A stretch of DNA of 64,000 nt, from positions 248,001 to 312,000 of IMG/VR virus record IMGVR_UViG_3300036853_000446. One strand, 5' to 3'. This document shows positions 2,692 through 64,000 of this stretch, one piece after another. The position numbers were made by a program, and so were the translations under genes. The notes below the pieces were generated by a model that saw nothing but the letters and a program-made list of their open reading frames with translations, was not told the origin of the DNA and did not search any database. Positions within the stretch are counted from its first letter, which is position 1. The number at the start of each line of letters is the position of its first letter.

Positions 2692-2723
2692 ATCGGTTTC
2701 GCCATCAGCGTGTCGTGAATCTT

Positions 2724-2980
2724 GTCGTGGTCTGGTGGGCTCCACGCAGCCTCTCAAATCTCTCTGCTCGCTGAGGAGGCAGCGCAACAGAACCAACGTC
2801 GTGGTCAGGTGGGCTCCACGCAGCCTCTCAAATGTCCGAGATCGCGACTTTAGGGTATGTAAATTCGTCGTGTCGTGGTCAGGTGGGCTCCACGCAGCCT
2901 CTCAAAGAAGGTGAACCCGTTGCTGTATGCCTTCGCGTCTACGAGTCGTGGTCAGGTGGGCTCCACGCAGCCTCTCAAAG
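2724..2980 (-). CRISPR. CRISPR array A1 (4 repeats, 3 spacers)
   Basis: 36-nt repeats GTCGTGGTCWGGTGGGCTCCACGCAGCCTCTCAAAK at 2724, 2798, 2872, 2945; spacers 37-38 nt; leader on the right. Confidence 0.95.
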
Positions 2981-6358: not shown

Positions 6359-6814
6359 ATGGCTCTCAACACCGACGATCCAACAGAAACTAAACTCCGG
6401 AGCCTCGTGCTCGTCTCAAAAGATCGGGGCTCAGAAGACCTGGGCATGGGCTCTGTCGTAAACGCTGACCCGTCGCTCGTGCACCTCGGAGACGCGAGTG
6501 TACACCCCGCTGCGATTACCGAGGTCCGCATCGAGCGGTTCTGCGAGAAATACCAGGTGACGACATACGATTTGAGGACACTGGTGTCTGCTGGCTGGTG
6601 CACCTCGATTGGCACACGGTGGGGGGTTTTCCCTTCCGTTTGCATGAAATGCGGGCAGCCACCGCGCCAAGACGTCCACGAGATTCTCCGTCCCAAGACC
6701 CCCCACGGGGAGAAGGACCTCCGCGGCTGGACGCACCTGCACTGCGCGATCCATTGGTCCGAGAAGGCCAAGAGGCTGCATGATCAGGTCGAGCGCCTAA
6801 TCGCCGACGATTGA
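6359..6814 (+). CDS. hypothetical protein with CxxC...HxxC
   Basis: CMKC...HLHC. Confidence 0.55.
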   Translation: MALNTDDPTETKLRSLVLVSKDRGSEDLGMGSVVNADPSLVHLGDASVHPAAITEVRIERFCEKYQVTTYDLRTLVSAGWCTSIGTRWGVFPSVCMKCGQPPRQDVHEILRPKTPHGEKDLRGWTHLHCAIHWSEKAKRLHDQVERLIADD

Positions 6815-6822
6815 CGCGCCAC

Positions 6823-6852
6823 GGATCAAATGCCCGGGGCCCTCCCGTACTC
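6823..6852 (+). promoter_or_regulatory. class-1 ECF-like promoter
   Basis: GGATCAAA-N-CCCGTACTC, ATG 6858. Confidence 0.75.
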
Positions 6853-6857
6853 TCGCC

Positions 6858-7019
6858 ATGATCCATCTCTCAAACCTTCCGGCGGAAGAAATCACGATCG
6901 TGGCATACGTTGGCCTTCTGCTCATGGGCGAGTTCATCAAACCCAAGACCAGGCCCGTGCAGATCACATTCGCGCTTCTGGCACCACTCGCAATACTCGT
7001 CCTTTGGTTCGTCAAATGA
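6858..7019 (+). CDS. 53-aa membrane protein (2 hydrophobic segments)
   Basis: ITIVAYVGLLLMG and ITFALLAPLAILVLWFV; ATGA overlap with next gene; not in ORF track. Confidence 0.6.
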   Translation: MIHLSNLPAEEITIVAYVGLLLMGEFIKPKTRPVQITFALLAPLAILVLWFVK

Positions 7020-11773: not shown

Positions 11774-12521
11774 GTCGTGGTCTGGCCTCTTAACTCGAAA
11801 GACGAGCCGTCGTTGATGGGGACATGCGCTGAGTCGTGGTTGGGTGGGCTCCACGCAGCCTCTCAAATGGTATCGAGGAGGACGTCCTTCTCGCTGAACC
11901 GTCGTGGTCTGGTGGGCTCCACGTAGCCTCTCAAATCCACCAGGACGGACAAGCGTCCCGAGTAGTCGGCGTGTCGTGGTTGGGTGGGCTCCACGCAGCC
12001 TCTGAAATCGTCGGGCGAATCGTGTCTCATGCCGACAAGGTACTCGTCGTGGTCGGGTGGGCCCCACGCAGCCTCTCAAATCCGTTGAGAGAAGTAGTGA
12101 CCACTCGGTGTGGGATCTCGTCGTGGTCTGGTGGGCTCCACGCAGCCTCTCAAATTTTTCCTAAGGAGCGAGCCGGCGAACTATCCTCCCCGTCGTGGTC
12201 GGGTGGGCCCCACGCAGCCTCTCAAATCAAGATACCGCTGGTGCGAGACATTGGTGATACGTGGTCGTGGTTAGGTGGGCTCCACGCAGCTTCTCAAAAT
12301 CCATGACGGCGTCAGCGGTTGGTGAGGGTCATCCTCAAGTCGTGGTTGGGTGGGCTCCACGCAGCCTCTCAAATCAGCCGCTCAAATTACGCACCTCGCC
12401 ACGCTGGTTCCGTCGTGGTCAGGTGGGCTCCACGCAGCCTCTCAAATTCTTGTAATCGCCTGCGAGCCGTCCAGCCGCGGGTTGCGTCGTGGTCTGGTGG
12501 GCTCCACGCAGCCGCTCAAAT
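11774..12521 (-). CRISPR. CRISPR array A2 (10 repeats plus 1 internally deleted trailer repeat)
   Basis: Repeats at 11833, 11901, 11973, 12046, 12120, 12192, 12264, 12339, 12412, 12486; degenerate copy 11774-11794. Confidence 0.97.
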
Positions 12522-17550: not shown

Positions 17551-18318
17551 ATCGTGGTCTGGTAAGGCTCCATACAGCCTCGCGAATAAGTTCACAGCTT
17601 GAAAGGTCAAGGACAGATCGGGTTGTCGTGGTTGGGTGGGCTCCACGCAGCCTCTCAAATCGGTCGCCTTTGACACGGGCATACTCATATCATGCTGCCA
17701 GTCGTGGTTGGGTGGGCTCCACGCAGCCTCTCAAATCCGAGCACCACCGCGTCGCGACGCGGAAGGTAGTGGGGTCGTGGTTGGGTGGGCTCCACGCAGC
17801 CTCTCAAATCGCAAGCCAAGGATGCACGTGCTACGGACGACCGCGTGTCGTGGTTGGGTGGGCTCCACGCAGCCTCTCAAATCAAGCTGGCGGAAGCTGC
17901 CGTTGACCACTCTTCTATCGTCGTGGTCGGGTGGGCTCCACGCAGCCTCTCAAATCTGAACCTCGAGTGGATGCTTAATGGACCGCTCATCGTCGTGGTC
18001 GGGTGGGCTCCACGCAGCCTCTCAAATCCAATGCGCGACGAGGCTCGTCACCTGCGTCGGATTGTCGTGGTTGGGTGGGCTCCACGCAGCCTCTCAAATT
18101 CGCCTCGAAGCAGTCGGCACTCGTATCGGATGCGCACGTCGTGGTCGGGTGGGCTCCACGCAGCCTCTCAAATTCTGCGCCTGCAGGTGCGGGCTACCGA
18201 TCACAGTGGCGTCGTGGTCGGGTGGGCTCCACGCAGCCTCTCAAATCCGTCAAGTCCTCGGCCCCGAGACGGAGGTTGTGCTGTCGTGGTCGGGTGGGCT
18301 CCACGCAGCCTCTCAAAT
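17551..18318 (-). CRISPR. CRISPR array A3 (10 repeats plus 1 degenerate trailer repeat)
   Basis: Repeats at 17625, 17701, 17774, 17847, 17920, 17992, 18064, 18138, 18211, 18283; degenerate copy 17551-17587. Confidence 0.97.
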
Positions 18319-42159: not shown

Positions 42160-43602
42160 ATGGCAAAGAGGAAGTCAAAGACGACGAGTGTCCAGCCCGG
42201 TGAAGTGCTGAAGGGGTTTCGCGTCAAACTCAGACCGACCCAGGAGGATCTGCGTTACCTATCGACGGCTCAAGTCGAGCTGATGACGATGTGGAACATC
42301 CTCGTGATAACGTGGAAGACGCACGTCGATTACTGCGTTCGGCATTGCGAGGACCTCGGGCTCATCGGACCCGTACCGCCACGACCGACCTCGGACCAAG
42401 ACACGAACGTGCCCGAAGAGATCGCCGAATGGGAGGAGTACGCGGCACTCTGCCGTGAACGCCGCCGAAGCGCTCGCGAGCAGTGTAAGACCGTCGAGGG
42501 TCTGACACGGCGCGACTGGGCGAATCGAGCCCTCGATTACCACCAACTTGATCTCACGGAGAAGGCTCGAGAGCAGACGCAGATCGATTACCGCGTCCTG
42601 CGGTCCGCCGTGAAGGGCGTCACGACGGCCCATATGGCCCAGGCCGTCATCGAGACTTACAAGGCGTCATTGCAGAAAGGGCGGCCGCCACCGAAGCTCA
42701 AGAGACGCCCGCTCGAGATGCCTCTCTTGCTTCGCAGCGGTAAGGATTTGCTTACGCTTTCAGCGAACCACTCCACCCGAACGACGGCGTCCGGGAAGAA
42801 GCGGCTCACCGGCTCCCACCACTGCATCGTCAAGTTTGGCCCGCTCAAGATCGGGGGACGATTCAACCGCCCGCCGTCGGGTCCCTTCCTCCAGGGCATT
42901 TCGATCGGGCTCGAGAAGGACGGCTGGTACGCCTCCGCGAAGGTCCGGACCCTACCTGAGGATCTGCCGAAGCCAACGAAGGAAATCATCGCGATCAACC
43001 CGGGACTCGAATGCCTCTACGCCGACAATGAGGGTTATGTGATCGAGAACCCACGGGGCAACGCTTACTCCCTCCGGATGCGCGAGATGAGCGATTGGAT
43101 CGACGACGCCGAAACCCAGTGGGACGAAGCCCACCGTCGCAACCATCAAGCTCGATATGCCGAGCGTTTCGCGCGGCACACGGAGGACCTCATCTACAGC
43201 CGCATCCTCCCGAAGCTCGCCGATTACGAGACGATTCTCATCGGCAAGGCCGGCAAAACCGCCGCTCAAGGTCGACAAAACCGCATCAGTAAGAACGACG
43301 AGGGCGGCTACGTTTCGGCCATGAGCTTGATGCAGCAGCTCATCATCCAGAGGTATGGCCTCTATGACCCCGACGAGAATCCGACGGGGCGAGTGCGAGT
43401 GCTGGAGTCCATGGGAATTTCCCGGAGGTGCTCGCGTTGCGGAACCGAGCACGCAACCCGTTATCAACGCAACAATTTACGCCGGTATGACCAACAGACC
43501 GATTGCCAGGAACCCTCGTGTCGGCTCAAGATACACGTCGATGTTGGCGCCGCTCGCAACCTGCTTTCCAACTATCGGGATTTGCAGGCGGCAGCAGAAT
43601 GA
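42160..43602 (+). CDS. compact type V (TnpB/Cas12-like) effector with inactivated RuvC, 480 aa
   Basis: TnpB-like GFRVKLRPT, PKLKRR, GWYAS; RuvC-I IIAINPG (D->N), RuvC-II TILIGK (E->G), Zn finger CSRC...CQEPSC, RuvC-III HVDVGAARNL; RBS GAGGGG; array 2 nt downstream. Confidence 0.88.
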   Translation: MAKRKSKTTSVQPGEVLKGFRVKLRPTQEDLRYLSTAQVELMTMWNILVITWKTHVDYCVRHCEDLGLIGPVPPRPTSDQDTNVPEEIAEWEEYAALCRERRRSAREQCKTVEGLTRRDWANRALDYHQLDLTEKAREQTQIDYRVLRSAVKGVTTAHMAQAVIETYKASLQKGRPPPKLKRRPLEMPLLLRSGKDLLTLSANHSTRTTASGKKRLTGSHHCIVKFGPLKIGGRFNRPPSGPFLQGISIGLEKDGWYASAKVRTLPEDLPKPTKEIIAINPGLECLYADNEGYVIENPRGNAYSLRMREMSDWIDDAETQWDEAHRRNHQARYAERFARHTEDLIYSRILPKLADYETILIGKAGKTAAQGRQNRISKNDEGGYVSAMSLMQQLIIQRYGLYDPDENPTGRVRVLESMGISRRCSRCGTEHATRYQRNNLRRYDQQTDCQEPSCRLKIHVDVGAARNLLSNYRDLQAAAE

Positions 43603-43604
43603 CC

Positions 43605-44869
43605 CTCAGAACGGCAGCGTGGTGCCTACCCTCCCACGACGAGGAGTTCGGTGGCCGCGCGCGATGATGTGCAAGACCTCAGAACGGCAGCGTGGTGCCT
43701 ACCCTCCCACGACACGAGGTCGGAAAGAGTCTCAATCTCGGCAATCTCACGCTCAGAACGGCAGCGTGGTGCCTACCCTCCCACGACGACCTGCGGAAGA
43801 AGGGCCTTCGCCGATCTACTTGGGCTCAGAACGGCAGCGTGGTGCCTACCCTCCCACGACGAAGTGACGTCTACCAATTGGGCTTGGTCCTCTATCACTC
43901 AGAACGGCAGCGTGGTGCCTACCCTCCCACGACTTATGGGGATGAACCGAGAACCAGCCTCGATCGATGTCTCAGAACGGCAGCGTGGTGCCTACCCTTC
44001 CACGATAGCCGCGTCCTCCAAACTGCCGAATCGATTCCGAAACTCAGAACGGCAGCGTGGTGCCTACCCTCCCACGACGGCATCTCCACTCGTTCCCTCG
44101 TCCTCCGGGTATGGACCTCAGAACGGCAGCGTGGTGCCTACCCTCCCACGACTACGGCTGGCGGTCCCCCGCCAAACGAGGTTGGCGTGCTCAGAACGGC
44201 AGCGTGGTGCCTACCCTCCCACGACGAAACATCACGCGCCTGGGCAACAGCATCAGCGTCGCCATCTCAGAACGGCAGCGTGGTGCCTACCCTCCCACGA
44301 CCAACGACATGACCCCGTGGAACCTGTGAGCTTGCTCGGCGCTCCTCGGAACGGCAGCGTGGTGCCTACCCTCCCACGACGGAAAGACTCGTTCGTGATC
44401 CCGAGTCGACCCCCATGCTCAGAACGGCAGCGTGGTGCCTACCCTTCCACGACGAGGAGTTCGGTGGCCGCGATGGTGATGCGCAAGCCCTCAGCATGGC
44501 AGCGTGGTGCCTACCCCTCCACGACTTCGAGCAACACGTCAACGCGCGTATTGGCTCGTTCAGCCTCAGAGTGGCAGCGCGGTGCCTACCCTTCCGCGAC
44601 ACGTCCCCCAGTTAGCGGAAAGCCTCGGTACTGGTCTCAGAATGGCAGCGTGGTGCCTACCCTTCCACGACCACATCCGTGGATAGAGAGTCCCCCTCCG
44701 GAGTCAACCTCAGAACGGCAGCGTGGTGCCTACCCTTCCACGACTTTCCGATCTCGTTAAAGTAGATGCGGACTTATGGCAGCGTGGTGCCTACCCTTCC
44801 ACGACGTGCACGGGTCTTCTCAAAGAAAGACGCCTCAGAACGGCAGCGTGGTGCCTACCATTCCACGAC
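43605..44869 (+). CRISPR. CRISPR array B (18 repeats, 17 spacers)
   Basis: 36-nt CTCAGAACGGCAGCGTGGTGCCTACCCTYCCACGAC at 43605, 43678, 43752, 43825, 43898, 43971, 44043, 44117, 44190, 44266, 44345, 44418, 44490, 44565, 44636, 44709, ~44770 (5'-degenerate), 44834; decay increases away from the gene. Confidence 0.98.
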
Positions 44870-45975: not shown

Positions 45976-46160
45976 GGTTGAGAGGCTGCGTGGAGCCCAC
46001 CCAACTACGACGGTATCATTCGGCTTTTTATCAGGTCCCCCGATCCGGAGTAACTTGCGAGGCTGCGTGGAGCCCACCCAACTACGATATGCCCGTGCCG
46101 ACGTGGCGCTTCCAAGAAAGGTACATTTGAGAGGCTGCGTGGAGCCCATCACACCACGAC
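45976..46160 (+). CRISPR. CRISPR mini-array A4 (3 family-A repeats)
   Basis: Repeats at 45976, 46053, 46125 in the ATTTGAGAGG...CCACGAC orientation. Confidence 0.9.
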
Positions 46161-46250: not shown

Positions 46251-46286
46251 GATGAAATGGCAGCGTGGTGCCTACCCTTCCACGAC
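46251..46286 (+). repeat. orphan family-B CRISPR repeat
   Basis: GATGAAATGGCAGCGTGGTGCCTACCCTTCCACGAC, 3' 28 nt match repeat B. Confidence 0.85.
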
Positions 46287-49340: not shown

Positions 49341-51872
49341 ATGCTCAGAGAGTCAGGGGCAGCTCGCGCGAGGGACTGTGCACCCTCAAGTGCCGTCCAC
49401 CGCACCGCTAAAACAGAGCCCGTTGTCATTCAGTGCTTTGAGGCACCGTGCGGGACACGACCACATAACCTGCCGAAACGAAAAGGAAAGGATAAAGCGT
49501 ACGTCCCGAACAGGTCGCAGCGTGCCAGCTACACAGCCCTGGATGGTCAACTCCTTTGTATACTTACCAAGCCAACGGGTAGCGGAAAAACCATTGACAT
49601 CCTAACACTTGCACTGAGCGACCTCGCAAAGCCCGACGGACGAAAACAGGTCGTCATCTACTCGATGACGGACATCGGTCCTGGCTTCGGTGGCCCAGGA
49701 AGGCAGGAGGGCCCCATCACGATCGACGTTCCGGGGCATGGGCTCATGACCTGGACCCCGATTTGTGCCTCTGAACAGACCGTCGAAACGATCATCAACT
49801 TCTTGCGACGGCGCCCCGCCAAGGATCGCAGTCAGCGCATGCTCATCTGCACCCACCTTGCTCTGGTGCTGGCTCACGAGGAAATGCTGCGACGTGGTTA
49901 TAAGCGCCCCTTCAAAAAAACCTCACTCTACATAGACGAGTGCCACCACATCTGCTGGGACATGTCGAGTGGCACAGCCGTCACGAACGGCCTCGGTAAG
50001 ATCGTTTCCCATTACTACGAGTGCCGGCCCGGCAAGCTCGTGCTTGCCACTGCCACGTTCATGCGCCCTGACGGGCAGGTCATCCCGCCCGAGTATCGCG
50101 ACAAATTCGCCGCCTACGAGCTTCCGATGCATGAGCACCTTGCATCGATGCCGCACCTGAAGGGGATACGCTTCCACTTCGTGATGGCGTCCGCTGTCGA
50201 GGCTGTTGAGACGATCATCGGGGGAGACCCTCATCGCCCGACGCTAATGTGGTTGCCAAACAACGTGATCGGCAGCGCCAAGGCGCCTTATGTCAAGCGC
50301 TTGGTCGACGCTACACCTGACTGTATTCGCGACCGAATTTACGACTTCACGGATGACGAGCAGGTGTCCGAGATTCGAGAGCGCTTTCACCGGCTCAAAC
50401 TGGACCCTGTCGAGTACCCGTGCCTTGGGATTGCCCTGCGTCGGTTGCTCGAGGGAGTTGACTCACCTATGGCGAGCCGCGGGATCATCCTCGGGCTTCG
50501 CGGTATCCGGGACATCATCCAGATGGTCGGGCGCTTTATCCGCGACTTAGAAGGCAAGCCGTATGCTGATATCTACATCGTCGTCGACCCTCCCTCCGAA
50601 GACGAAGCAGACGTTGTCGAGCACCTCGAGGACAATCTCTCCGCCATCTTCATTGCGATGATCGCGGGGTGGCAGTACGGCCCGGCCCGCAAGCCCCGGA
50701 ACAAGGCGGAGCGGGATCTCGCCGAGAAGGTGGGTAAGATTCTCAGCAACCCGGAAGCAACCACCGTAGTGCTAAACGCAATCGCGAGCGCGGTCGCCCG
50801 TCACGCTGACGGTGAGCCGGAGCAACTCAGCGCCGGCATGCACGAATCCATGCGTCGACTGGCAGAAGAGCGACCGGACCTCGCGGACATGAAGGACCCT
50901 GCGGTTCGGTCACGACTCGTCGAGGACGTCGACGAAAGAATGGCAGGACCTGCTGCCGAAGCCGAGAAGAAGCTGAAATACAAGATCCCGGGGCTCAAGG
51001 GAGCGCGAGATCTGACTGGGCTCAAGTTGACGGCTGAGCAAGGTCTTGCTCGCAACATCACGGTCCTCGGCTTCACGTGCGGCGCGCGCAGCATGAAGAT
51101 GATGAGGGAGAGTTTAGCGTCGGATACAATTGAACTCGTATACGAAGATGTGCGAGAAGCCGCCCTCCGATGGTGGGAAGCAACCGGTAAGTTCCCCCAC
51201 GCGGGAATGGTGGGCGTAGTGGTTGATATCGGAGGCCGTCAGCATTGCTGGCGTCAGGTCAACGGCTGGCTGAGCCGGCACTGCAGCTCGTCCTTGGGCA
51301 AACTCAGAATCGAGTGCACGGGCAACCTCGGCAGGGGTCTGATTCCGTATGATCTAGTCGCAGAGGAGGCATCTGAATACCGGGCCCGGACCGGTGAGTG
51401 GCCTCGAATTAAATCGGGACCCCTCGCTCGATTGCGTACTACGTGGGAGACACTATACCAAAAGTTCATTCGGGAAGGCACTAGCCTGGAAGACTTTTTG
51501 GAATCCAGGTTCGGGCCCTTGCGACTGAGACACTTCGACACCTATGACGAATGGCGAAAACACGCACTGGATGCAAACGTCGGTTGTCATACGGACTATC
51601 AGAGAGCGCGCGGTGAGTCTCGCATTGACAGCCGATTCCCCTCAAATCCGCGAGATTATTACGGTGCCGGGTGGAAGGGGTGGCCAAAAGACCGCAAGGT
51701 CTCACGTGGTGAAAGCCATGGATGCGCAAAGTTGTCCGATGCATCGATCAAGCGAATGCGAAGGCGATTTAAGCAGCGTTTCACAAAGCGCGCCGTCGCC
51801 GAAGAGTTTGGTGTCTCCATCTCAACCGTCAAGCTCATCAAGTCTGGGCGCATTTGGGCACACGTGAAGTGA
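49341..51872 (+). CDS. SF2 helicase with C-terminal DNA-binding modules
   Basis: KPTGSGKT, IDECHH, ATAT, LLEGVD, IQMVGRFIR; CGGTGTA at 49307-49313. Confidence 0.85.
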   Translation: MLRESGAARARDCAPSSAVHRTAKTEPVVIQCFEAPCGTRPHNLPKRKGKDKAYVPNRSQRASYTALDGQLLCILTKPTGSGKTIDILTLALSDLAKPDGRKQVVIYSMTDIGPGFGGPGRQEGPITIDVPGHGLMTWTPICASEQTVETIINFLRRRPAKDRSQRMLICTHLALVLAHEEMLRRGYKRPFKKTSLYIDECHHICWDMSSGTAVTNGLGKIVSHYYECRPGKLVLATATFMRPDGQVIPPEYRDKFAAYELPMHEHLASMPHLKGIRFHFVMASAVEAVETIIGGDPHRPTLMWLPNNVIGSAKAPYVKRLVDATPDCIRDRIYDFTDDEQVSEIRERFHRLKLDPVEYPCLGIALRRLLEGVDSPMASRGIILGLRGIRDIIQMVGRFIRDLEGKPYADIYIVVDPPSEDEADVVEHLEDNLSAIFIAMIAGWQYGPARKPRNKAERDLAEKVGKILSNPEATTVVLNAIASAVARHADGEPEQLSAGMHESMRRLAEERPDLADMKDPAVRSRLVEDVDERMAGPAAEAEKKLKYKIPGLKGARDLTGLKLTAEQGLARNITVLGFTCGARSMKMMRESLASDTIELVYEDVREAALRWWEATGKFPHAGMVGVVVDIGGRQHCWRQVNGWLSRHCSSSLGKLRIECTGNLGRGLIPYDLVAEEASEYRARTGEWPRIKSGPLARLRTTWETLYQKFIREGTSLEDFLESRFGPLRLRHFDTYDEWRKHALDANVGCHTDYQRARGESRIDSRFPSNPRDYYGAGWKGWPKDRKVSRGESHGCAKLSDASIKRMRRRFKQRFTKRAVAEEFGVSISTVKLIKSGRIWAHVK

Positions 51873-52297
51873 GACAACGCCAGGCGAAGTCCAATGGAAC
51901 GAGCGTTCCCACTCGCGTCCTGACCTGGTACCTCGCCACGAGCGCGAAAGGTGGCACCGTCGACGACTGCTCTCGCTCTCTGGGGCTCGCGAATCAGTCG
52001 GTGTCGGGGGCGGTGACACGGCTCACGAACGCCGGCAAGCTGTCAAAGACCGACCTCACGCGCAGCACTCGACTGAAGCGCCCGGCAGCCGTCTACGTCC
52101 ACAGCAAATTCGCAAAGGGCCCGTCCAATGCGAACAAGGCCGAAGCTTCCCGAGCTGAAGCCGCTCGGGAAGCAAGAGTCCTCCAACTCTTCCGGCAGTA
52201 TGTGGAGGCTCGGAAGAAGGCAGGGAAGGACGAGCGGGCGATCCAGCGGGCGCTCATGCGGTTAATGAAAGGGCTGGCGGTCGAGGCGGAGCGTTAA
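51869..52297 (+). CDS. winged-HTH protein (same pattern as 46750-47292)
   Basis: GTVDDCSRSLGLANQSVSGAVTRLTNAGKL...TRSTR...AAVY. Confidence 0.7.
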   Translation: MRQRQAKSNGTSVPTRVLTWYLATSAKGGTVDDCSRSLGLANQSVSGAVTRLTNAGKLSKTDLTRSTRLKRPAAVYVHSKFAKGPSNANKAEASRAEAAREARVLQLFRQYVEARKKAGKDERAIQRALMRLMKGLAVEAER

Positions 52298-58494: not shown

Positions 58495-58534
58495 AGGGGT
58501 TGGAATGATGTTGAAGGGGTTGGAATGATGTTGA
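58495..58534. repeat. perfect 2x20-bp tandem repeat
   Basis: AGGGGTTGGAATGATGTTGA twice. Confidence 0.9.
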
Positions 58535-58681: not shown

Positions 58682-58846
58682 ATGGCAGCACGTCGGACCC
58701 GTTCACCATCACAAGCGCCATCAGAGCCGAATGCCGAGACGGTGCGCGTAACCTGTTACCAGGTCGACGTTTCGCGGGAACAGCAACAAGCCATTCATCA
58801 GCAGCTTCTCGAATTACTCGCTGAAATTTATCGGAACCTTAAATGA
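58682..58846 (+). CDS. 54-aa protein coupled to the recombinase
   Basis: MAARRTRS...QLLELLAEIYRNLK; ATGA overlap with 58843; not in ORF track. Confidence 0.55.
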   Translation: MAARRTRSPSQAPSEPNAETVRVTCYQVDVSREQQQAIHQQLLELLAEIYRNLK

Positions 58847-60420
58847 AGGCTGCAATCTACGCCCGTGTGTCGTCCGACCAGCAAAGGGAGCGCCACACCA
58901 TCGGCTCGCAGCTCACCGAGCTACCCAAGTACGCAAAAAGCCAAGGCTGGACGGTTGTCCGACTCTACCAAGACGACGGCAAGTCGGGAGAGAGTATCGA
59001 CGGGCGTCCAGAGTTTCAGGCACTTCTCGAGGACGCCGAGAAGAAACTCTTTGAAATTGTCCTCGTCATCGACCTCGACCGCATCACTCGCTCGAAACGT
59101 GATCAGGAGGGGGCTTTCATCTACGACACGTTTCGGTTGCATGGCATCAAGCTGGCGACTCCGAGCAACGGTCTCATCGATCTCGAGAATGAGGACCAGG
59201 ACCTTCAGATCGGTATCCTTCAGGCTTTCGCAAAGTTTGAGAAGCGGAAATTTCTCCGCCGAACGATGCGAGGTAAGTATCAGGCCGCTAAAGACGGGAA
59301 GCGGTATGGTTCGATCGATCCCTACGGGTATCGGTGGGTTATCGACCCGGTCTTGAAGGCGGGGGGCTCGTACCAGATCGTCGAGGACGAAGCTAAAGTC
59401 GTTCGTCGCATCTACAGCCTCGCTCTCGAAGGTCATGGCGTGGCAATGATCGCTTGGATGTTAGAGAATGAGGGTATTCGGACGCGACCACGCGCACCCC
59501 GTGGCACCGAAGGCAAGATCGCCGGTCCTTGGTGGCGCTCGTCTGTGCTGAAGGTTCTGCATTCCGTGACGTACACGGGATCGTTCAAAGTCCTCAAGGG
59601 GAAGGAGAGCGAACCCCTCTCGATCAAGGTCCCGCCTATTGTCACCCGGGCAACCTGGGACGCAGCCCAGAGGGCGCTCACACAGCGCAAGATGTCCTCG
59701 GGCGCTCCGGCACGACACGACCACCTCTTACGCGGATGCGCCTCGTGCGGCGTCTGCGGGTACAAGATGTGGATCGTTACCCCTAGGGCCGGCAAAAGCG
59801 CTGCCTACTACAGATGCTGCACGACCAACGGATGGCGCGGCATGGGCCTCAAGGGCCCATGTGGCAACAAGCACCACCGAGTGGACCGCACGGACCATGA
59901 GGTCCAGACGAAGGTGCTCGAGATTCTGCAAAATCCAAAGCTGCTAGCTCAAGCGTGTTCGTTGCAGGGTGAACCTACGGACGGGGTCGACTGGAAAGGT
60001 CAGCTCCGAGGTCTCGAGCAAAAGCTTGCGATACTGGATGAGGCCGCGTCCGACGCGATGGTCCGTCAGCGTCGGGGAATCATTCCTTCCGCGGTCGCCG
60101 AGAAGGAACTCCTGAACATTGCCCGCGAGCGAAAGCTCGTTGACCGAAACGTCAAACTAGCGCGTGTCAGATCCGGTAAAGCCTCAGCTGAACGCAGCCT
60201 GCGCCAAAATATCGAGGATCAAGCAAAGGCCCTAAGCAGCGGACTCGATCAAGCGGACTTTGAAACGCGACGGAAGATTATCACCCTGCTCCTTCCGAGA
60301 GAGCTGGGCTGCGGTGTCGTCCTGCACCGGGACGGTGGTATCGACATCAAATGGGTCCTGCCACTGCCCGGCGACATCGAGCACGTGGAACTACGCACCG
60401 CCCTCAAAAAAGTTGGGTGA
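58843..60420 (+). CDS. large serine recombinase (integrase)
   Basis: AAIYARVSS, DDGKSG, RPEFQALL, DLDRITR, PYGY recombinase domain, CGVC...YYRC...C Zn ribbon, coiled coil. Confidence 0.95.
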   Translation: MKAAIYARVSSDQQRERHTIGSQLTELPKYAKSQGWTVVRLYQDDGKSGESIDGRPEFQALLEDAEKKLFEIVLVIDLDRITRSKRDQEGAFIYDTFRLHGIKLATPSNGLIDLENEDQDLQIGILQAFAKFEKRKFLRRTMRGKYQAAKDGKRYGSIDPYGYRWVIDPVLKAGGSYQIVEDEAKVVRRIYSLALEGHGVAMIAWMLENEGIRTRPRAPRGTEGKIAGPWWRSSVLKVLHSVTYTGSFKVLKGKESEPLSIKVPPIVTRATWDAAQRALTQRKMSSGAPARHDHLLRGCASCGVCGYKMWIVTPRAGKSAAYYRCCTTNGWRGMGLKGPCGNKHHRVDRTDHEVQTKVLEILQNPKLLAQACSLQGEPTDGVDWKGQLRGLEQKLAILDEAASDAMVRQRRGIIPSAVAEKELLNIARERKLVDRNVKLARVRSGKASAERSLRQNIEDQAKALSSGLDQADFETRRKIITLLLPRELGCGVVLHRDGGIDIKWVLPLPGDIEHVELRTALKKVG

Positions 60421-60632
60421 CGCGCTCGTAACACCTGCAGCGCTCGCGAGCGCACAGGCTGAGGCGGAACTAGGCTGATCTCTCGGCATTTCGAGGTAAT
60501 AATGTGGCCATACCCTGCTCAAGTTGTGGCCACATTATTACCGGCGTAAACTGTTGATTCTTCGTGAATTTTTGAGTGACCTCTCATGCTTGCGGCGCCG
60601 TTCTCAGGCCGATTCGCGGGTATGCTGCACCG

Positions 60633-61070
60633 ATGGCCGAGACCACTGAACGGCCATCTTCTCCGGCGGCTCATGCTAGACTCGAGACGATGTCGACCGC
60701 CGAGCGCGTTGTCTCTCAATTTATCGAGGTTGATTTCGAAGTCGCTGCCATGAGCAACGTTCTCCCCGAGGACAGCGGCGTCGAGGATGCCGTCCTCTGG
60801 ATCAGCCCGGGTGAGTCCGATGGTAAAGACCTGGCGCACGGCCCCCGCCTCAAGGTCGTGCTGGGCACCAAGATAACGGCAGAGAGCCTCCGCGATTCCG
60901 TGAGCGTGACGATTGAGGCAACCCCACGGGTCATCGGGTCGCGGACGCTCCCGGGCAAGGTCAAGCGTCAGGTGGAAGCCTTCATTCACCTGAATCAGGA
61001 CGTCTTGCTCCGCCACTGGCGCGGTGAGCTTGGGTCGAAGCAGACGCTCAACCTGCTTCAGCCCATCTGA
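60633..61070 (+). CDS. DUF4160-like protein, paralog of 4860-5549
   Basis: GKDLAHGPRLKV...FIHLNQDVLLRHW. Confidence 0.7.
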   Translation: MAETTERPSSPAAHARLETMSTAERVVSQFIEVDFEVAAMSNVLPEDSGVEDAVLWISPGESDGKDLAHGPRLKVVLGTKITAESLRDSVSVTIEATPRVIGSRTLPGKVKRQVEAFIHLNQDVLLRHWRGELGSKQTLNLLQPI

Positions 61071-61127
61071 AGTCCCGGACATCTCTACACACGGGCGCGA
61101 ACGTCGGGGCCCTCCCCAATGAGGTCG

Positions 61128-61134
61128 CGGTGTA
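61128..61134 (+). promoter_or_regulatory. class-2 motif CGGTGTA
   Basis: 9 nt before ATG 61144. Confidence 0.55.
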
Positions 61135-61143
61135 TGAGCAGAG

Positions 61144-61953
61144 ATGCAGGTAGTATCGCGGGGAAAGTATGAAGGAGTACCTTGGGAGGAATTCTTCGAG
61201 GACTTCGACTTCGGCGTAGAAGAGCATGCAGAGGACTACCTCGATGTTCTATTGGCGCCGCTGCGCGAAAGTGGCAAGTACGTGCGGCGTGAGATGCCGC
61301 AGGCCGATGCGTTCTCCGAATGGTTCGGCCTCAATACTCCGGCTATGCTCGAGGCGAAGACGAGAGCCGGCATGGTCACCTCGATCTATCGGCAGATCGG
61401 CATTGGCTGTGAGCGCCTCATGCGGAGAGTTATCCAAGACAATCTTGGCGTTCCCGCGTCGAGCTGTTCATGGGCGCACGTCGTCGAGGGACAAAATCGC
61501 TCACTGGATGCCCGAATACCGCTCGAATCAATTACGGCGAGGCGCAACGAATTTGAAGGCTGGATCTGCGAGGCCTCGGCACATCTTGGATGCGGTCCGA
61601 TGAATGCCGGGGCAGTGTTTGAGGTACGACAAGGCCACAAGAGCGGTGATTCGAAGAGGCAGGTAGGGGATCGCCTCAATGCCGCAAAGGCACTATCGGA
61701 GGGCTACCTTCCCGTCATGTTAGTAGTCTCGACGCAAATTCCAGAGGCGACACGAAGACGATACATCAAGGATGGTTGGCTAGTGTTGACAGGCAGGTTT
61801 GGCGGTGGCGCACTCAGGAGCAGCTACGCCTTCTTCGCTGACGTCCTAGGTTTTGACCTTGCCGGCTTCCTGGAAGACCACCAAGTGCACTTGAAAGAGT
61901 TGGTCCAATCCACTCTCAGTCGGGGCATGACGCCGCACTCGATGCAACCGTAG
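61144..61953 (+). CDS. putative type II restriction endonuclease-like (PD-(D/E)XK) protein
   Basis: SIYRQIGIGCE...SLDARI...AVFEVRQGHKSGDSKRQ. Confidence 0.65.
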   Translation: MQVVSRGKYEGVPWEEFFEDFDFGVEEHAEDYLDVLLAPLRESGKYVRREMPQADAFSEWFGLNTPAMLEAKTRAGMVTSIYRQIGIGCERLMRRVIQDNLGVPASSCSWAHVVEGQNRSLDARIPLESITARRNEFEGWICEASAHLGCGPMNAGAVFEVRQGHKSGDSKRQVGDRLNAAKALSEGYLPVMLVVSTQIPEATRRRYIKDGWLVLTGRFGGGALRSSYAFFADVLGFDLAGFLEDHQVHLKELVQSTLSRGMTPHSMQP

Positions 61954-62025
61954 AAGCCCAAGCGCGCGAACATGCGGTGCCCTTCGGGTGAGAGAGGGCA
62001 AGCAGCAGTCCGACAAGCGTTCACG

Positions 62026-62574
62026 CTAAGGGCGCGTCGGAACATCGTGCTCGGGTAGCACGCGACAGAGCCGGTGGTCCCGCACGAGGAGCCGCCAGCG
62101 GGGCTTTCCAAACTTGGCGCCGCGTCCCTTGGCCCGCCACAACTCGTTGCCGTTGTCTTGCGTCCGCGAGAACGACGCCGTCCTCAGGACCTCCGACAGC
62201 TCTTGCCGGGCCTTTGCCAAGCCGGCTGGGTTGTCCTCGCCACACGAGAGCAAACAGAAATCGCGGACCACGCTGACCGACAGCTTGCCGGGCTCGCATT
62301 CGATGTAGCGCTCGGGAGCCGGTACTTGAGCGACGTTGGCCCTCAACGTTTCAGCCCGCGCGCGGTGTCTCTCGGTGGTTACGATCTCGACCTTCCACGT
62401 GTCGCGGGCGTCCGTACCGCTGCCCGTGAGCGTGAGGCGATCCGTGACGTAACCCCGCTCCGCACAGCGCGTCGCGATCGCTTCGAGACTCGCCGTCACC
62501 TCCGACCAGAAACGCCCGTCGGAGGTGACACGCTGTGCCGCGTCCGGCTCGGTGACGCGGAGAGTCGACTTCAC
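62026..62574 (-). CDS. hypothetical protein
   Basis: GTGA overlap with upstream gene. Confidence 0.55.
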   Translation of the reverse strand: MKSTLRVTEPDAAQRVTSDGRFWSEVTASLEAIATRCAERGYVTDRLTLTGSGTDARDTWKVEIVTTERHRARAETLRANVAQVPAPERYIECEPGKLSVSVVRDFCLLSCGEDNPAGLAKARQELSEVLRTASFSRTQDNGNELWRAKGRGAKFGKPRWRLLVRDHRLCRVLPEHDVPTRP

Positions 62575-63092
62575 GCCGCCGTCGAGGCGCTGAGAAACTG
62601 CGCCAGAAGCGCACGCAACACCGGTTCCGCCTCCTGCAGGTCCTCGAGTGTGGGGGTCATCCGCTCCCATTCGATCGTAATATCACGGTCGCGGTCGCCG
62701 GGGTGGGCGGCATATTGGCCGACGCGGCCGGTGCCCGATTCATCGGAGCTGTACCAGAAACCATTGCGTCCGAGGTAGCAGCCACCGTCGGTCGTCTGCC
62801 GGCGCCAGGTGTGATAGAAGCCCGTCTCCGTCGGCACGTCCTCGGTTTCTCGACCGCGGACACGGACGACCGAAGGTCCGCGGCCATGCCGCTCTTCGCT
62901 CGGTGGGTAACTGTTGTCGAAATGCCCCGCCTCATCCGTGATGCTCGTGCTGGTGCCCTTCCAGACGTCGGGCTGCCGACGCGCCAGGATCTTGCCCATT
63001 GCGTTACACAAGCGCAGCAGCCGGGTCTGTTCCTCAGCGTCGGTTTGCTCGATTTTGGCGGCCAGTTCTTCGAGCTGTTCAATCGTTATCAT
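62571..63092 (-). CDS. hypothetical protein
   Basis: RBS GGGAGAG; class-1 motif upstream. Confidence 0.65.
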   Translation of the reverse strand: MITIEQLEELAAKIEQTDAEEQTRLLRLCNAMGKILARRQPDVWKGTSTSITDEAGHFDNSYPPSEERHGRGPSVVRVRGRETEDVPTETGFYHTWRRQTTDGGCYLGRNGFWYSSDESGTGRVGQYAAHPGDRDRDITIEWERMTPTLEDLQEAEPVLRALLAQFLSASTAA

Positions 63093-63138
63093 GATCTCTC
63101 CCAAGGGTGAGCGCTTGTTGACGTGCGCTTGCCCTAGA

Positions 63139-63167
63139 GAGTACGGGCCAGGGTTCAGGTTTGATCC
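63139..63167 (-). promoter_or_regulatory. class-1 ECF-like promoter
   Basis: GGATCAAA-N-CCCGTACTC. Confidence 0.75.
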
Positions 63168-63636
63168 GTTGGGTCGTAACGCCCTCTTGTGGGACGTTCC
63201 CCGAATAACCTACGAGGCGTTCTTCGCCGTGCACTCGATACAGCCAAAGAACCCAGGATGGGTCTTCGGCGAGTTGAGCCAGCTTCGCGGAGTCAACGAA
63301 GCGATCGCAGTGAGCGCAGCGCCGGAGACGAGTCCGTCCTTTGGCCTCCGCGGGATGCGGAAAGCCCCGCCGGTCTCGAGTCTTGTGCCCGGGGCACTCG
63401 GGGCAGCAGGCGTCGGGTCCATGGTGCGGGCAGGTCACGGCAGCTTTTACACCGCCAGGGCGCGGGCACGAGCGGTGTCGTTCCGCTGAGATTTCGCAGG
63501 GGCGTTCGCAATTTCCGACACAGCAGGTGCAGCCTCACTTCAGCGCCTAAATTCATGACCTTTCGGGTCGACAAACTGACTGCCAAAAATGCTCGTCTCG
63601 GTATACAATTCCCTTTGAAATCGATGACGAAAAACC

Positions 63637-63786
63637 ATTTCAGAGGCTGCGTGGAGCCCGCCCAACCACGACTCATTCAATCGGCAGAACTTGGTTCAAA
63701 TATGAAGGGCTGCGTGGAGCCCACCCAACCACGACAAGATTCACGACACGCTGTGAGAGGCCGCGTGGAGCCCACCCAACCACGAC
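63637..63786 (+). CRISPR. CRISPR mini-array A5 (3 family-A repeats, short spacers)
   Basis: Repeats at 63637, 63700, ~63751; spacers 27 and 15-18 nt; AT-rich upstream with TACAAT at 63604-63609. Confidence 0.9.
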
Positions 63787-64000
63787 AAGCACCAGGATCA
63801 CTTTGTCCAGCTGAGCCGCCGGAGTAGTTCCCGGTGGCCCAGGCGACGGCCTCCCGGAGGCTTCGCGCGCTTCATTTCTTCGCGGCCTTCCTCTGGCGGT
63901 ATTTGACGACGTCGGCGGCGACCTTCTCCTGCTCGACGCCGAACATGTCGGCGACGAACCCGACGGTCACGTAGCTGTGGACCATCTCGGGATCCAAGGC

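Follow-up and report, generated by a model that had tools for sequence, protein, structure and literature searches.

A candidate non-acquiring mini-CRISPR array with shortened guides on a mobile element whose TnpB-sized effector appears RuvC-defective

The 64,000-nucleotide (nt) stretch of DNA analysed here (the window) corresponds to positions 248,001–312,000 of the IMG/VR virus record IMGVR_UViG_3300036853_000446, a linear element of 407,634 base pairs (bp) that is 86% complete according to CheckV. Close to its downstream end, the window contains a small CRISPR array, hereafter called the mini-array, in which three 36-nt repeats on the plus strand are separated by two unique spacers, the direct-repeat arrangement that is characteristic of a CRISPR array. 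We tentatively interpret this locus, at slightly less than an even chance, as an orphan mini-CRISPR array belonging to a type V system that resides on a mobile element, has no adaptation genes and employs a RuvC-defective effector the size of TnpB, operating by the mechanism outlined below. Judged by its sequence, the mini-array is a genuine CRISPR array and probably a functional, non-acquiring guide cassette.

The principal evidence comes from the structure of the repeats. A 28-nt repeat core, GGCTGCGTGGAGCCCACCCAACCACGAC, was matched 30 times in the window versus 0 matches expected from 100 shuffles. To describe its fold, we aligned 27 distinct repeats from the window and from seven homolog loci, and modeled a 4-bp stem (columns 9–12 with 19–22) together with a pseudoknot between the loop and the repeat tail (columns 14–18 with 30–34). 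Over the 27 repeats, 99.2% of the cells pair in this model; none of 500 shuffles was as good, and controls in which the segments were slid gave 32–50% pairing. Compensatory double changes were observed at seven of the nine pairs, and all five loop-tail pairs covary, as evidenced by the replacement of CGUGG/CCACG with UGCAG/CUGCA, CACGA/UCGUG or CGCGG/CCGCG. The two types of repeats that occur on the element, A and B, are distinguished by a compensated flip within the stem, GGCU/AGCC in the A type versus GGCA/UGCC in the B type, which turns a U-A pair into A-U. Separately, one repeat of the B-type array (44565–44600, plus strand) shows a loop U changed to C along with a tail A changed to G, by which the pseudoknot pair is kept, and the same pair of changes occurs in the homolog locus L223; this amounts to covariation within a single array.

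Divergence among the repeats of the mini-array is distributed unevenly. Mismatches were counted at 6 of 24 positions in the 5′ 8-nt parts and at 2 of 84 positions in the cores (Fisher p=0.0014). When all eight atypical units of the window were considered, the corresponding counts were 23/64 and 10/224 (p=5e-10). The five atypical units located outside the mini-array follow the same trend, and at the B-type cores 44770–44805 and 46251–46286 the 5′ 8 nt have been wholly replaced. Since neutral decay would affect both parts of the repeat equally, a spared core next to a variable 5′ part argues for purifying selection on the handle of the CRISPR RNA (crRNA). An earlier, sequence-only reading of this DNA had described repeats that diverge mostly in the 5′ 8 nt and keep the pseudoknot core, and both the mismatch counts and the covariation of the five pseudoknot pairs bear this out. 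The orientation, with the handle at the 5′ side followed by the guide, was deduced from the fact that arrays follow cas12 directly, on the same strand and within a few nt, in seven loci (this element, L004, L006, L220, L221, L222 and L223) and from the conserved part of the repeat abutting the downstream spacer. The latter arrangement is also found with other crRNA-only type V effectors.

The anatomy of the mini-array sets it apart from the other arrays of the element, in which ordinary spacers measure 32–43 nt, mostly 36–38. Its two units have lost 10 and 22 nt from the distal part of the spacer, and the lengths of 27 and 15–18 nt that were claimed earlier proved accurate, the range for the second spacer reflecting whether its end is set by the repeat register or by identity to the flank of array A1 (Table 1). 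The spacers of the mini-array contain 41–47% guanine plus cytosine (GC) versus 54–63% for ordinary spacers. Unrelated hypothetical genes flank the locus, which is 20 kb downstream of cas12, and a search of Rfam matched no family. A Logan contig assembled from the source run spans positions 59271–64000 with zero differences from the window, which makes an assembly artefact unlikely; as it derives from the same sample, it does not constitute independent biology.

The segment upstream of the mini-array was found to be AT-rich (39% GC at 63586–63636, versus 60% for the window) and without similarity to the conserved leader of arrays A1–A3. It contains a sigma-70-like promoter candidate that ends 27 nt before repeat 1 and is the only such site within 62900–64000, where 0.2 would be expected; the identical rule yields approximately 0.1 sites per kb per strand in the element. 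Neither the standard leader nor the region upstream of cas12 has a sigma-70-like site. A placement of this kind by chance is unlikely, with a probability of roughly 1 in 100 as judged after the fact. The promoter and terminator calls at the mini-array are consensus matches and thus predictions. Overall, these data agree with the proposal that an AT-rich segment with TACAAT stands in place of the standard leader. The leader motif of A1–A3, CTCGCAA...GCCTT...CCTATnTT, recurs in L060 and L001, where it is found in leaders next to cas12 homologs.

Table 1. Positions of the mini-array, the other repeat loci and the effector gene in the window; promoter and terminator entries are predicted sites.
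Feature	Position	Strand	Details
Sigma-70-like promoter candidate	63580–63609	+	CTGCCA-18-TACAAT, consensus match
Repeat 1	63637–63672	+	core 63645–63672 with 1 mismatch (in linker); 5′ part ATTTCAGA, a variant also in array A2
Spacer 1	63673–63699	+	27 nt, 41% GC
Repeat 2	63700–63735	+	core 63708–63735 perfect; 5′ part with 3/8 changed
Spacer 2	63736–63750 (to 63753 by identity)	+	15 nt by repeat register, 18 nt by A1-trailer identity
Repeat 3	63751–63786	+	core 63759–63786 with 1 mismatch; 5′ part with 2/8 changed
Guide-like trailer	63787–63811	+	AAGCACCAGGATCAC...; after repeat 3, no closing repeat
GC-rich hairpins and weak terminator-like site	63812–63873; site 63857–63873	+	before the stop of the convergent minus-strand gene 63872–64108
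Last A1 repeat and guide	2706–2759; guide 2706–2723	-	same 18-nt guide as in the mini-array, AAGATTCACGACACGCTG
Array A1 (A-type)	2724–2980	-	4 repeats; ~130-nt leader conserved among A1, A2 and A3
Array A2 (A-type)	11833–12521	-	10 repeats; same leader
Array A3 (A-type)	17625–18318	-	10 repeats; same leader
TnpB/Cas12f-like effector (cas12)	42160–43602	+	480 aa from first Met; sole cas gene found; single-copy
B-type array	43605–44869	+	18 repeats; begins 2 nt after cas12 stop
Atypical locus A4	45976–46160, then 46251–46286	+	three degenerate A-type repeats, then a solitary B-type core

The effector encoded next to the B-type array gave weak matches to the Cas12f-like TNB and Cas12u models in Pfam and PADLOC. 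Its AlphaFold model (pLDDT 76) matched structures of TnpB, Cas12f, Cas12p, TranC and Cas12m with E values of 1e-8 to 1e-12; TnpB and Cas12f ranked above Cas12m in Foldseek, and ESM Atlas agreed on the fold. Searches of the PDB sequences with phmmer and with profiles did not find Cas12m. We identified 12 homologs with 52–72% identity, from soil and other metagenomes, and the resulting family, which seems to be uncharacterised, ranges from 435 to 520 amino acids (aa). No trans-activating crRNA (tracrRNA) or anti-repeat was found for it, and from its sequences the family appears to need crRNA only. A characteristic of the family is the substitution of Asn for Asp in RuvC-I (AINPGL; N280 here) and a RuvC-II without the conserved acidic residue (ILIGKAG here), such that the effector retains only the third RuvC Asp, D461. 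By comparison, the more distant protein P0015 (27% identity to the effector) keeps GIDVGL, IVVEDL and SDLNAARN (D, E, D), and these motifs make up the catalytic D-E-D of TnpB and Cas12f. Because two of the three RuvC acidic residues have been lost, and by analogy with Cas12m, the effector probably binds DNA without cutting it.

In the mechanism that we propose for the mini-array, the promoter at ~63580–63609 would drive a pre-crRNA of ~250 nt, in which each 28-nt core would fold as the stem-plus-pseudoknot handle indicated by covariation and would be bound by the Cas12-like protein of the element. Cleavage within the variable 5′ 8 nt, or close to them, would then yield crRNAs with guides of 27 nt, 15–18 nt and run-off length. 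As the lost RuvC residues and the Cas12m analogy suggest, these guides would direct DNA binding without cleavage, blocking transcription or replication of targets outside the element, which would belong to the host or to rival elements. The cassette would be unable to acquire spacers and was probably built by recombination among the arrays of the element itself. What has been retained would be the handle and at least the 15 PAM-proximal nt of the guide (PAM, protospacer-adjacent motif), the dispensable 5′ ends of the repeats and the distal spacer having been deleted or randomised.

The case for recombination comes from a 46-nt match of 63708–63753 to 2751–2706, which joins repeat 2 and spacer 2 of the mini-array to the last repeat of array A1 and the sequence that follows it. 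Over the shared guide, 18 of 18 positions are identical, and the adjoining repeats differ at 5/36 positions. Since the middle guide is thus a second copy of the terminal guide of A1, recombination between arrays of the element probably gave rise to the mini-array. A 42-nt stretch made up of repeat 1 and the 3 nt flanking it on either side resembles the terminal unit of A2 (95%). A gene for a 146-aa protein (2691–2251) starts 32 nt after the last A1 repeat; no homolog of 0.55–1.75 times its length was found, and as the word-based protein search covers only proteins within that range of the query length, such blanks say little.

A total of six repeat loci with 49 repeats were identified, all inside the window (48 cores by a looser search of the whole element, plus one variant repeat in the B array). 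Cas1 was not found on the whole 407-kb element. Several units outside the mini-array are also irregular. In the distal B array (44745–44833), spacers of 25 and 28 nt flank the repeat at 44770–44805, and the solitary B-type core is situated 90 nt after the degenerate A4 locus. These distal B units and the solitary core resemble the units of the mini-array and would be further handle-plus-guide units. B spacers 1 (43641–43677) and 12 (44454–44489), both on the plus strand, are identical over their first 19 nt and then differ at about one-third of the positions; they resemble two variant forms of a single protospacer, a hint of past acquisition despite the absence of Cas1 from the element. An apparent open reading frame (ORF) of 369 aa at 43651–44760 (plus strand) is not a gene, being the B array read through, and the same artefact accounts for a called gene of 413 aa in L222.

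Irregular arrays are not confined to this element. In L004, an eight-unit array (6483–6966) immediately follows the cas12 homolog P0007 (61% identity); it has spacers of about 26–37 nt and three stem variants (U-A, A-U and G-C), and its units at positions 6784 and 6907 share the first 17 nt of their guides. Beside P0013, the first three cores of the array in L221 (8422–8540) are only 16 and 19 nt apart, which leaves spacers of 8 and 11 nt when the 8-nt repeat 5′ part is counted and represents the most extreme shortening seen in the family. L223 has three repeat variants at normal spacing, and the arrays of L222, L220, L006 and L015 are regular. As read from these sequences, irregular, shortened and heterogeneous arrays are recurrent in at least three lineages of a family that has no visible adaptation module. 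The IMG/VR contig set yielded no A-type repeat and no cas12 relative. A scan with an 18-nt core pattern gave 90 metagenome matches and at least 120 genome matches; among the matches listed, the real arrays were only those of L015 and L060, and the genome scan was not informative on hosts.

Several observations weigh against a functional cassette of the kind proposed here. (i) Spacer 2 includes the repeat-end hexamer CACGAC and equals the A1 flank, and on these grounds it may be a scar of deletion or recombination and not a selected guide. (ii) The core change in repeat 3, U to C, creates an uncompensated C.A mismatch at the loop-closing stem pair (columns 12/19, a single unpaired cell at which natural variants have U.G). 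(iii) The array adjacent to the effector is B-type and the mini-array is A-type; we infer from the shared repeat architecture that this effector uses A-type repeats as well, and the inactivity of its RuvC domain is read from an alignment alone. (iv) Two sequencing runs were found to carry this DNA, both of DNA and none of RNA. (v) In L225, the sole related syntenic contig found (neighbours 62–74% identical), three genes and no repeats occupy the place of the mini-array; homologs of the neighbouring genes were also found on two unrelated viral contigs of 69% GC that have no repeats. (vi) Searches for targets returned no convincing candidates. All 48 spacers and trailers were compared with the 407-kb element, and the short guides, whether from the mini-array, A4, the solitary B core, the distal B units or the trailers, matched it at chance level when up to 2–5 mismatches were allowed or exact PAM-proximal seeds of 11–14 nt were required. 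No guide prefix of at least 9 nt occurred upstream of cas12, A4, the mini-array or the gene for an 843-aa protein described below, or in the array leaders, and none of at least 10 nt in ten homologous cas12 loci, including the region upstream of the P0004-type cas12. The guides of the B array and the mini-array had no match among INPHARED phages and PLSDB plasmids, and three pattern scans of IMG/VR contigs were blank, spacer 1 and the trailer being among the sequences without a match.

Two apparent hits of the mini-array guides were discarded. A 12-mer self-match to spacer 1 was attributed to chance, as it falls within coding sequence, away from any repeat, and an 18–20-nt match of spacer 2 in an unrelated viral contig of 41.6 kb (L224:4870–4889) was not counted as a target because the number of 18-mer matches is that expected by chance, no other spacer matches L224 and the site has no T-rich flank. 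For an ordinary spacer, A1 spacer 2 (2834–2871, minus strand), we noted an internal exact 18-nt match to positions 323,107–323,124 of the element, beyond the window, at a tandem CGCGACTTTAGGGT motif; ~0.01 such matches would be expected by chance, and the match is not anchored at the PAM-proximal end.

Part of this counter-evidence would be expected if the mini-array were a non-functional relic of illegitimate recombination or deletion among the arrays of the element, passively carried, with its short spacers as deletion scars. The identity of spacer 2 to a non-repeat flank of A1 with CACGAC at hand, the resemblance of repeat 1 and its flanks to the terminal unit of A2, the unrepaired stem of repeat 3 and the lack of conservation in L225 all fit such a history; furthermore, arrays without Cas1 can only decay, and the 8- and 11-nt spacers of L221 look too short to guide. 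However, the 28-nt handle has been spared by mutation to a much greater extent than would be predicted for a neutral relic, and the pattern of a kept core with a replaced 5′ part recurs at three further units of the window. The promoter-like site is correctly oriented and placed, and the shared guide has remained identical at every position though the neighbouring repeats differ. We regard a relic as rather unlikely, with a probability of about one quarter, yet as a serious rival.

A second alternative, which we consider unlikely, is that the mini-array encodes hard-wired regulators of the crlRNA/CreR kind, whose PAM-adjacent partial complementarity would guide the effector to promoters of the element or host and tune expression instead of providing defence. 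As in regulatory mini-arrays (10.1101/2023.03.03.530964; 10.1101/2023.03.10.532045), the locus combines a promoter-like site of its own and degenerate repeat 5′ parts with the lack of an acquisition leader. There are two copies of one guide, the higher AT content of the spacers is as expected of promoter targets, and a nuclease-dead effector suits repression. The target searches, on the other hand, recovered nothing above chance in the element (86% complete), the cassette is 20 kb from cas12, unlike CreR/CreA inside the cas locus, and it is absent from L225. Autoregulation of the CreR type is unsupported because guide matches were lacking upstream of cas12, in the leaders and in the homolog loci. 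The sequence-only reading had proposed fixed regulatory guides in place of immune memory, to be recognised by partial PAM-flanked matches in promoters. The first half of this proposal is supported, in that there is no leader and no Cas1, the 5′ parts have decayed, the handle is kept and one guide is present twice; the regulatory half was not supported, in that the leaders and the regions upstream of cas12 and of the 843-aa gene contained no prefix of at least 9 nt.

A decoy or hijacking RNA of the Racr/Cracr kind, by which A-type repeats would titrate or re-programme an A-type Cas12 of the host or a competitor and so protect the element, is highly improbable: A-type repeats with the same leader motif do adjoin a different cas12 (P0004, 68% identity) in L002 and L060, the element's own cas12 carries a B-type array and viruses have been shown to carry Cracr arrays that hold several short guides (10.1101/2024.10.29.618823), but three long A-type arrays with 22 ordinary spacers are hard to explain as decoys, and no guide matched upstream of the P0004-type cas12 or in its leader.

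Returning to the non-acquiring guide cassette, its anatomy is, by analogy, closest to the crlRNA/CreR mini-arrays and viral Cracr, and the logic of its effector closest to Cas12m, TldR and dCas12f. Regulatory mini-arrays with degenerate repeats have been described as crlRNA (Shmakov et al., 2023, 10.1101/2023.03.03.530964) and CreR/CreA (Liu et al., 2023, 10.1101/2023.03.10.532045). They share with the locus studied here one to few degenerate repeats that keep the Cas-binding handle, the lack of an acquisition leader, a promoter or promoter-like site of their own and a shorter spacer. They differ in being inside the cas locus and in having a guide that partly matches a cas or toxin promoter beside a PAM, whereas for the mini-array neither a location in the cas operon nor a promoter match was found. 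In addition, the known crlRNA/CreR cases serve nuclease-active type I and V-A systems, and the effector of the mini-array seems to be nuclease-dead.

The Cracr arrays of viruses, which have several short guides, and the solitary repeat units known as Racr (10.1101/2024.10.29.618823) are likewise borne by viruses or plasmids, multiplexed, short in their guides and compact as transcription units. Phages with Cracr borrow the Cas proteins of the host, however, whereas the present element encodes an effector itself, together with long arrays and, in all, five further repeat loci. Conflict between viruses is another setting in which virus-borne mini-CRISPR arrays have been described (Medvedeva et al., 2019, as cited in 10.1101/2023.03.03.530964). 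According to that citing account, these are small arrays in the genome of a virus, their spacers presumably directed against competitors, and they have spacers of normal length and rely on host Cas, in contrast to the 27- and 15–18-nt spacers and degenerate repeat 5′ parts seen here.

With respect to the effector, Cas12m silences by binding and has a non-canonical RuvC (PMC10442227). The similarities would include a compact, crRNA-only effector, a pseudoknotted handle and a non-canonical RuvC, and here, too, adaptation genes are absent; the activity of the protein encoded on this element is predicted from its sequence. Cas12m is ~600 aa long with the triads HDD, HEK, NED and others, whereas the present effector has 480 aa and N, none and D at these positions. 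There is no detectable sequence relationship to Cas12m, and the fold match is that of a generic TnpB/Cas12f. TldR (PMC10705468) and dCas12f-sigmaE (10.1101/2025.06.10.658880) are nuclease-dead relatives of TnpB or Cas12f that act as RNA-guided transcription factors with short fixed guides. They have no CRISPR arrays, a single fixed guide and a partner such as fliC, oppF or sigmaE, unlike the 49 repeats in six loci described above, and no sigma factor, fliC or oppF neighbour was found in Pfam scans of the ORFs tested.

That a short guide means binding without cutting, and hence regulation, is a rule from the nuclease-active Cas9 and Cas12a. Because the effector in question appears to be RuvC-dead, all of its guides would act by binding, and spacer length does not separate regulation from defence. 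The length of heteroduplex that is read is 12 bp for TnpB and 18 bp for Cas12m (PMC11013384), and a guide of more than 10 nt is enough for dCas12f (10.1101/2025.06.10.658880); guides of 15–18 nt are, therefore, plausibly of full strength for a TnpB-like protein of 480 aa.

A wider possibility, also unlikely in our estimation, is an RNA-guided repressor regulon, in which a RuvC-dead Cas12 would be fed by the long arrays and by scattered modules, each with its own promoter, a handle and a guide of 15–18 nt, that silence genes of the host or rivals. It is equally improbable that the modules of such a regulon are the mini-array, the distal B units, the A4 locus and the solitary B core. If true, the regulon would be a CRISPR-derived counterpart of TldR and dCas12f in which decaying arrays have been moulded into fixed guides of minimal size. 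In nuclease-active systems of types I, II and V-A, short-guide mini-arrays act as regulators, and they are also known as anti-CRISPR RNAs of phages. In the present case, this anatomy occurs in a Cas1-less, mobile-element-borne system whose miniature Cas12 seems unable to cut. If expressed, the mini-array would indicate that the minimal need of a binding-only effector is a 28-nt pseudoknot handle plus a guide of ~15–18 nt, and it would illustrate how arrays evolve after the loss of acquisition: they recombine, segments that can be spared are deleted and the handle undergoes compensatory change. The effector family would be of interest to those who design compact programmable repressors. How valuable the finding is depends on evidence of expression and targets beyond sequence data.

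The nature of the element itself deserves mention, since its status as a virus is the label given by IMG/VR. Pfam probes for Terminase_6N and the HK97 capsid were negative on the whole 407-kb element, a Pfam scan of the window ORFs identified ParB and a serine recombinase, and the contig that bears the cas12 homolog P0012 also carries genes for type IV secretion. On this basis, the element could be a megaplasmid or phage-plasmid instead of a virus.

Among the neighbouring genes, the 843-aa protein (49341–52297, plus strand), with a weak DEAD-helicase N-terminus and an HTH_7 C-terminus, and an accompanying 147-aa protein are 61–65% identical to the products of a gene pair located directly upstream of the cas12 homolog in L002 (6237–9205) and in L003. 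The presence of this pair near cas12 reflects either a shared backbone or a functional association. Finally, an exact 20-nt tandem duplication (58495–58534) was observed upstream of the gene for the large serine recombinase (58843–60420) and a palindrome with 23-nt arms (60495–60542) just downstream of it; both may be recombinase or regulatory sites.

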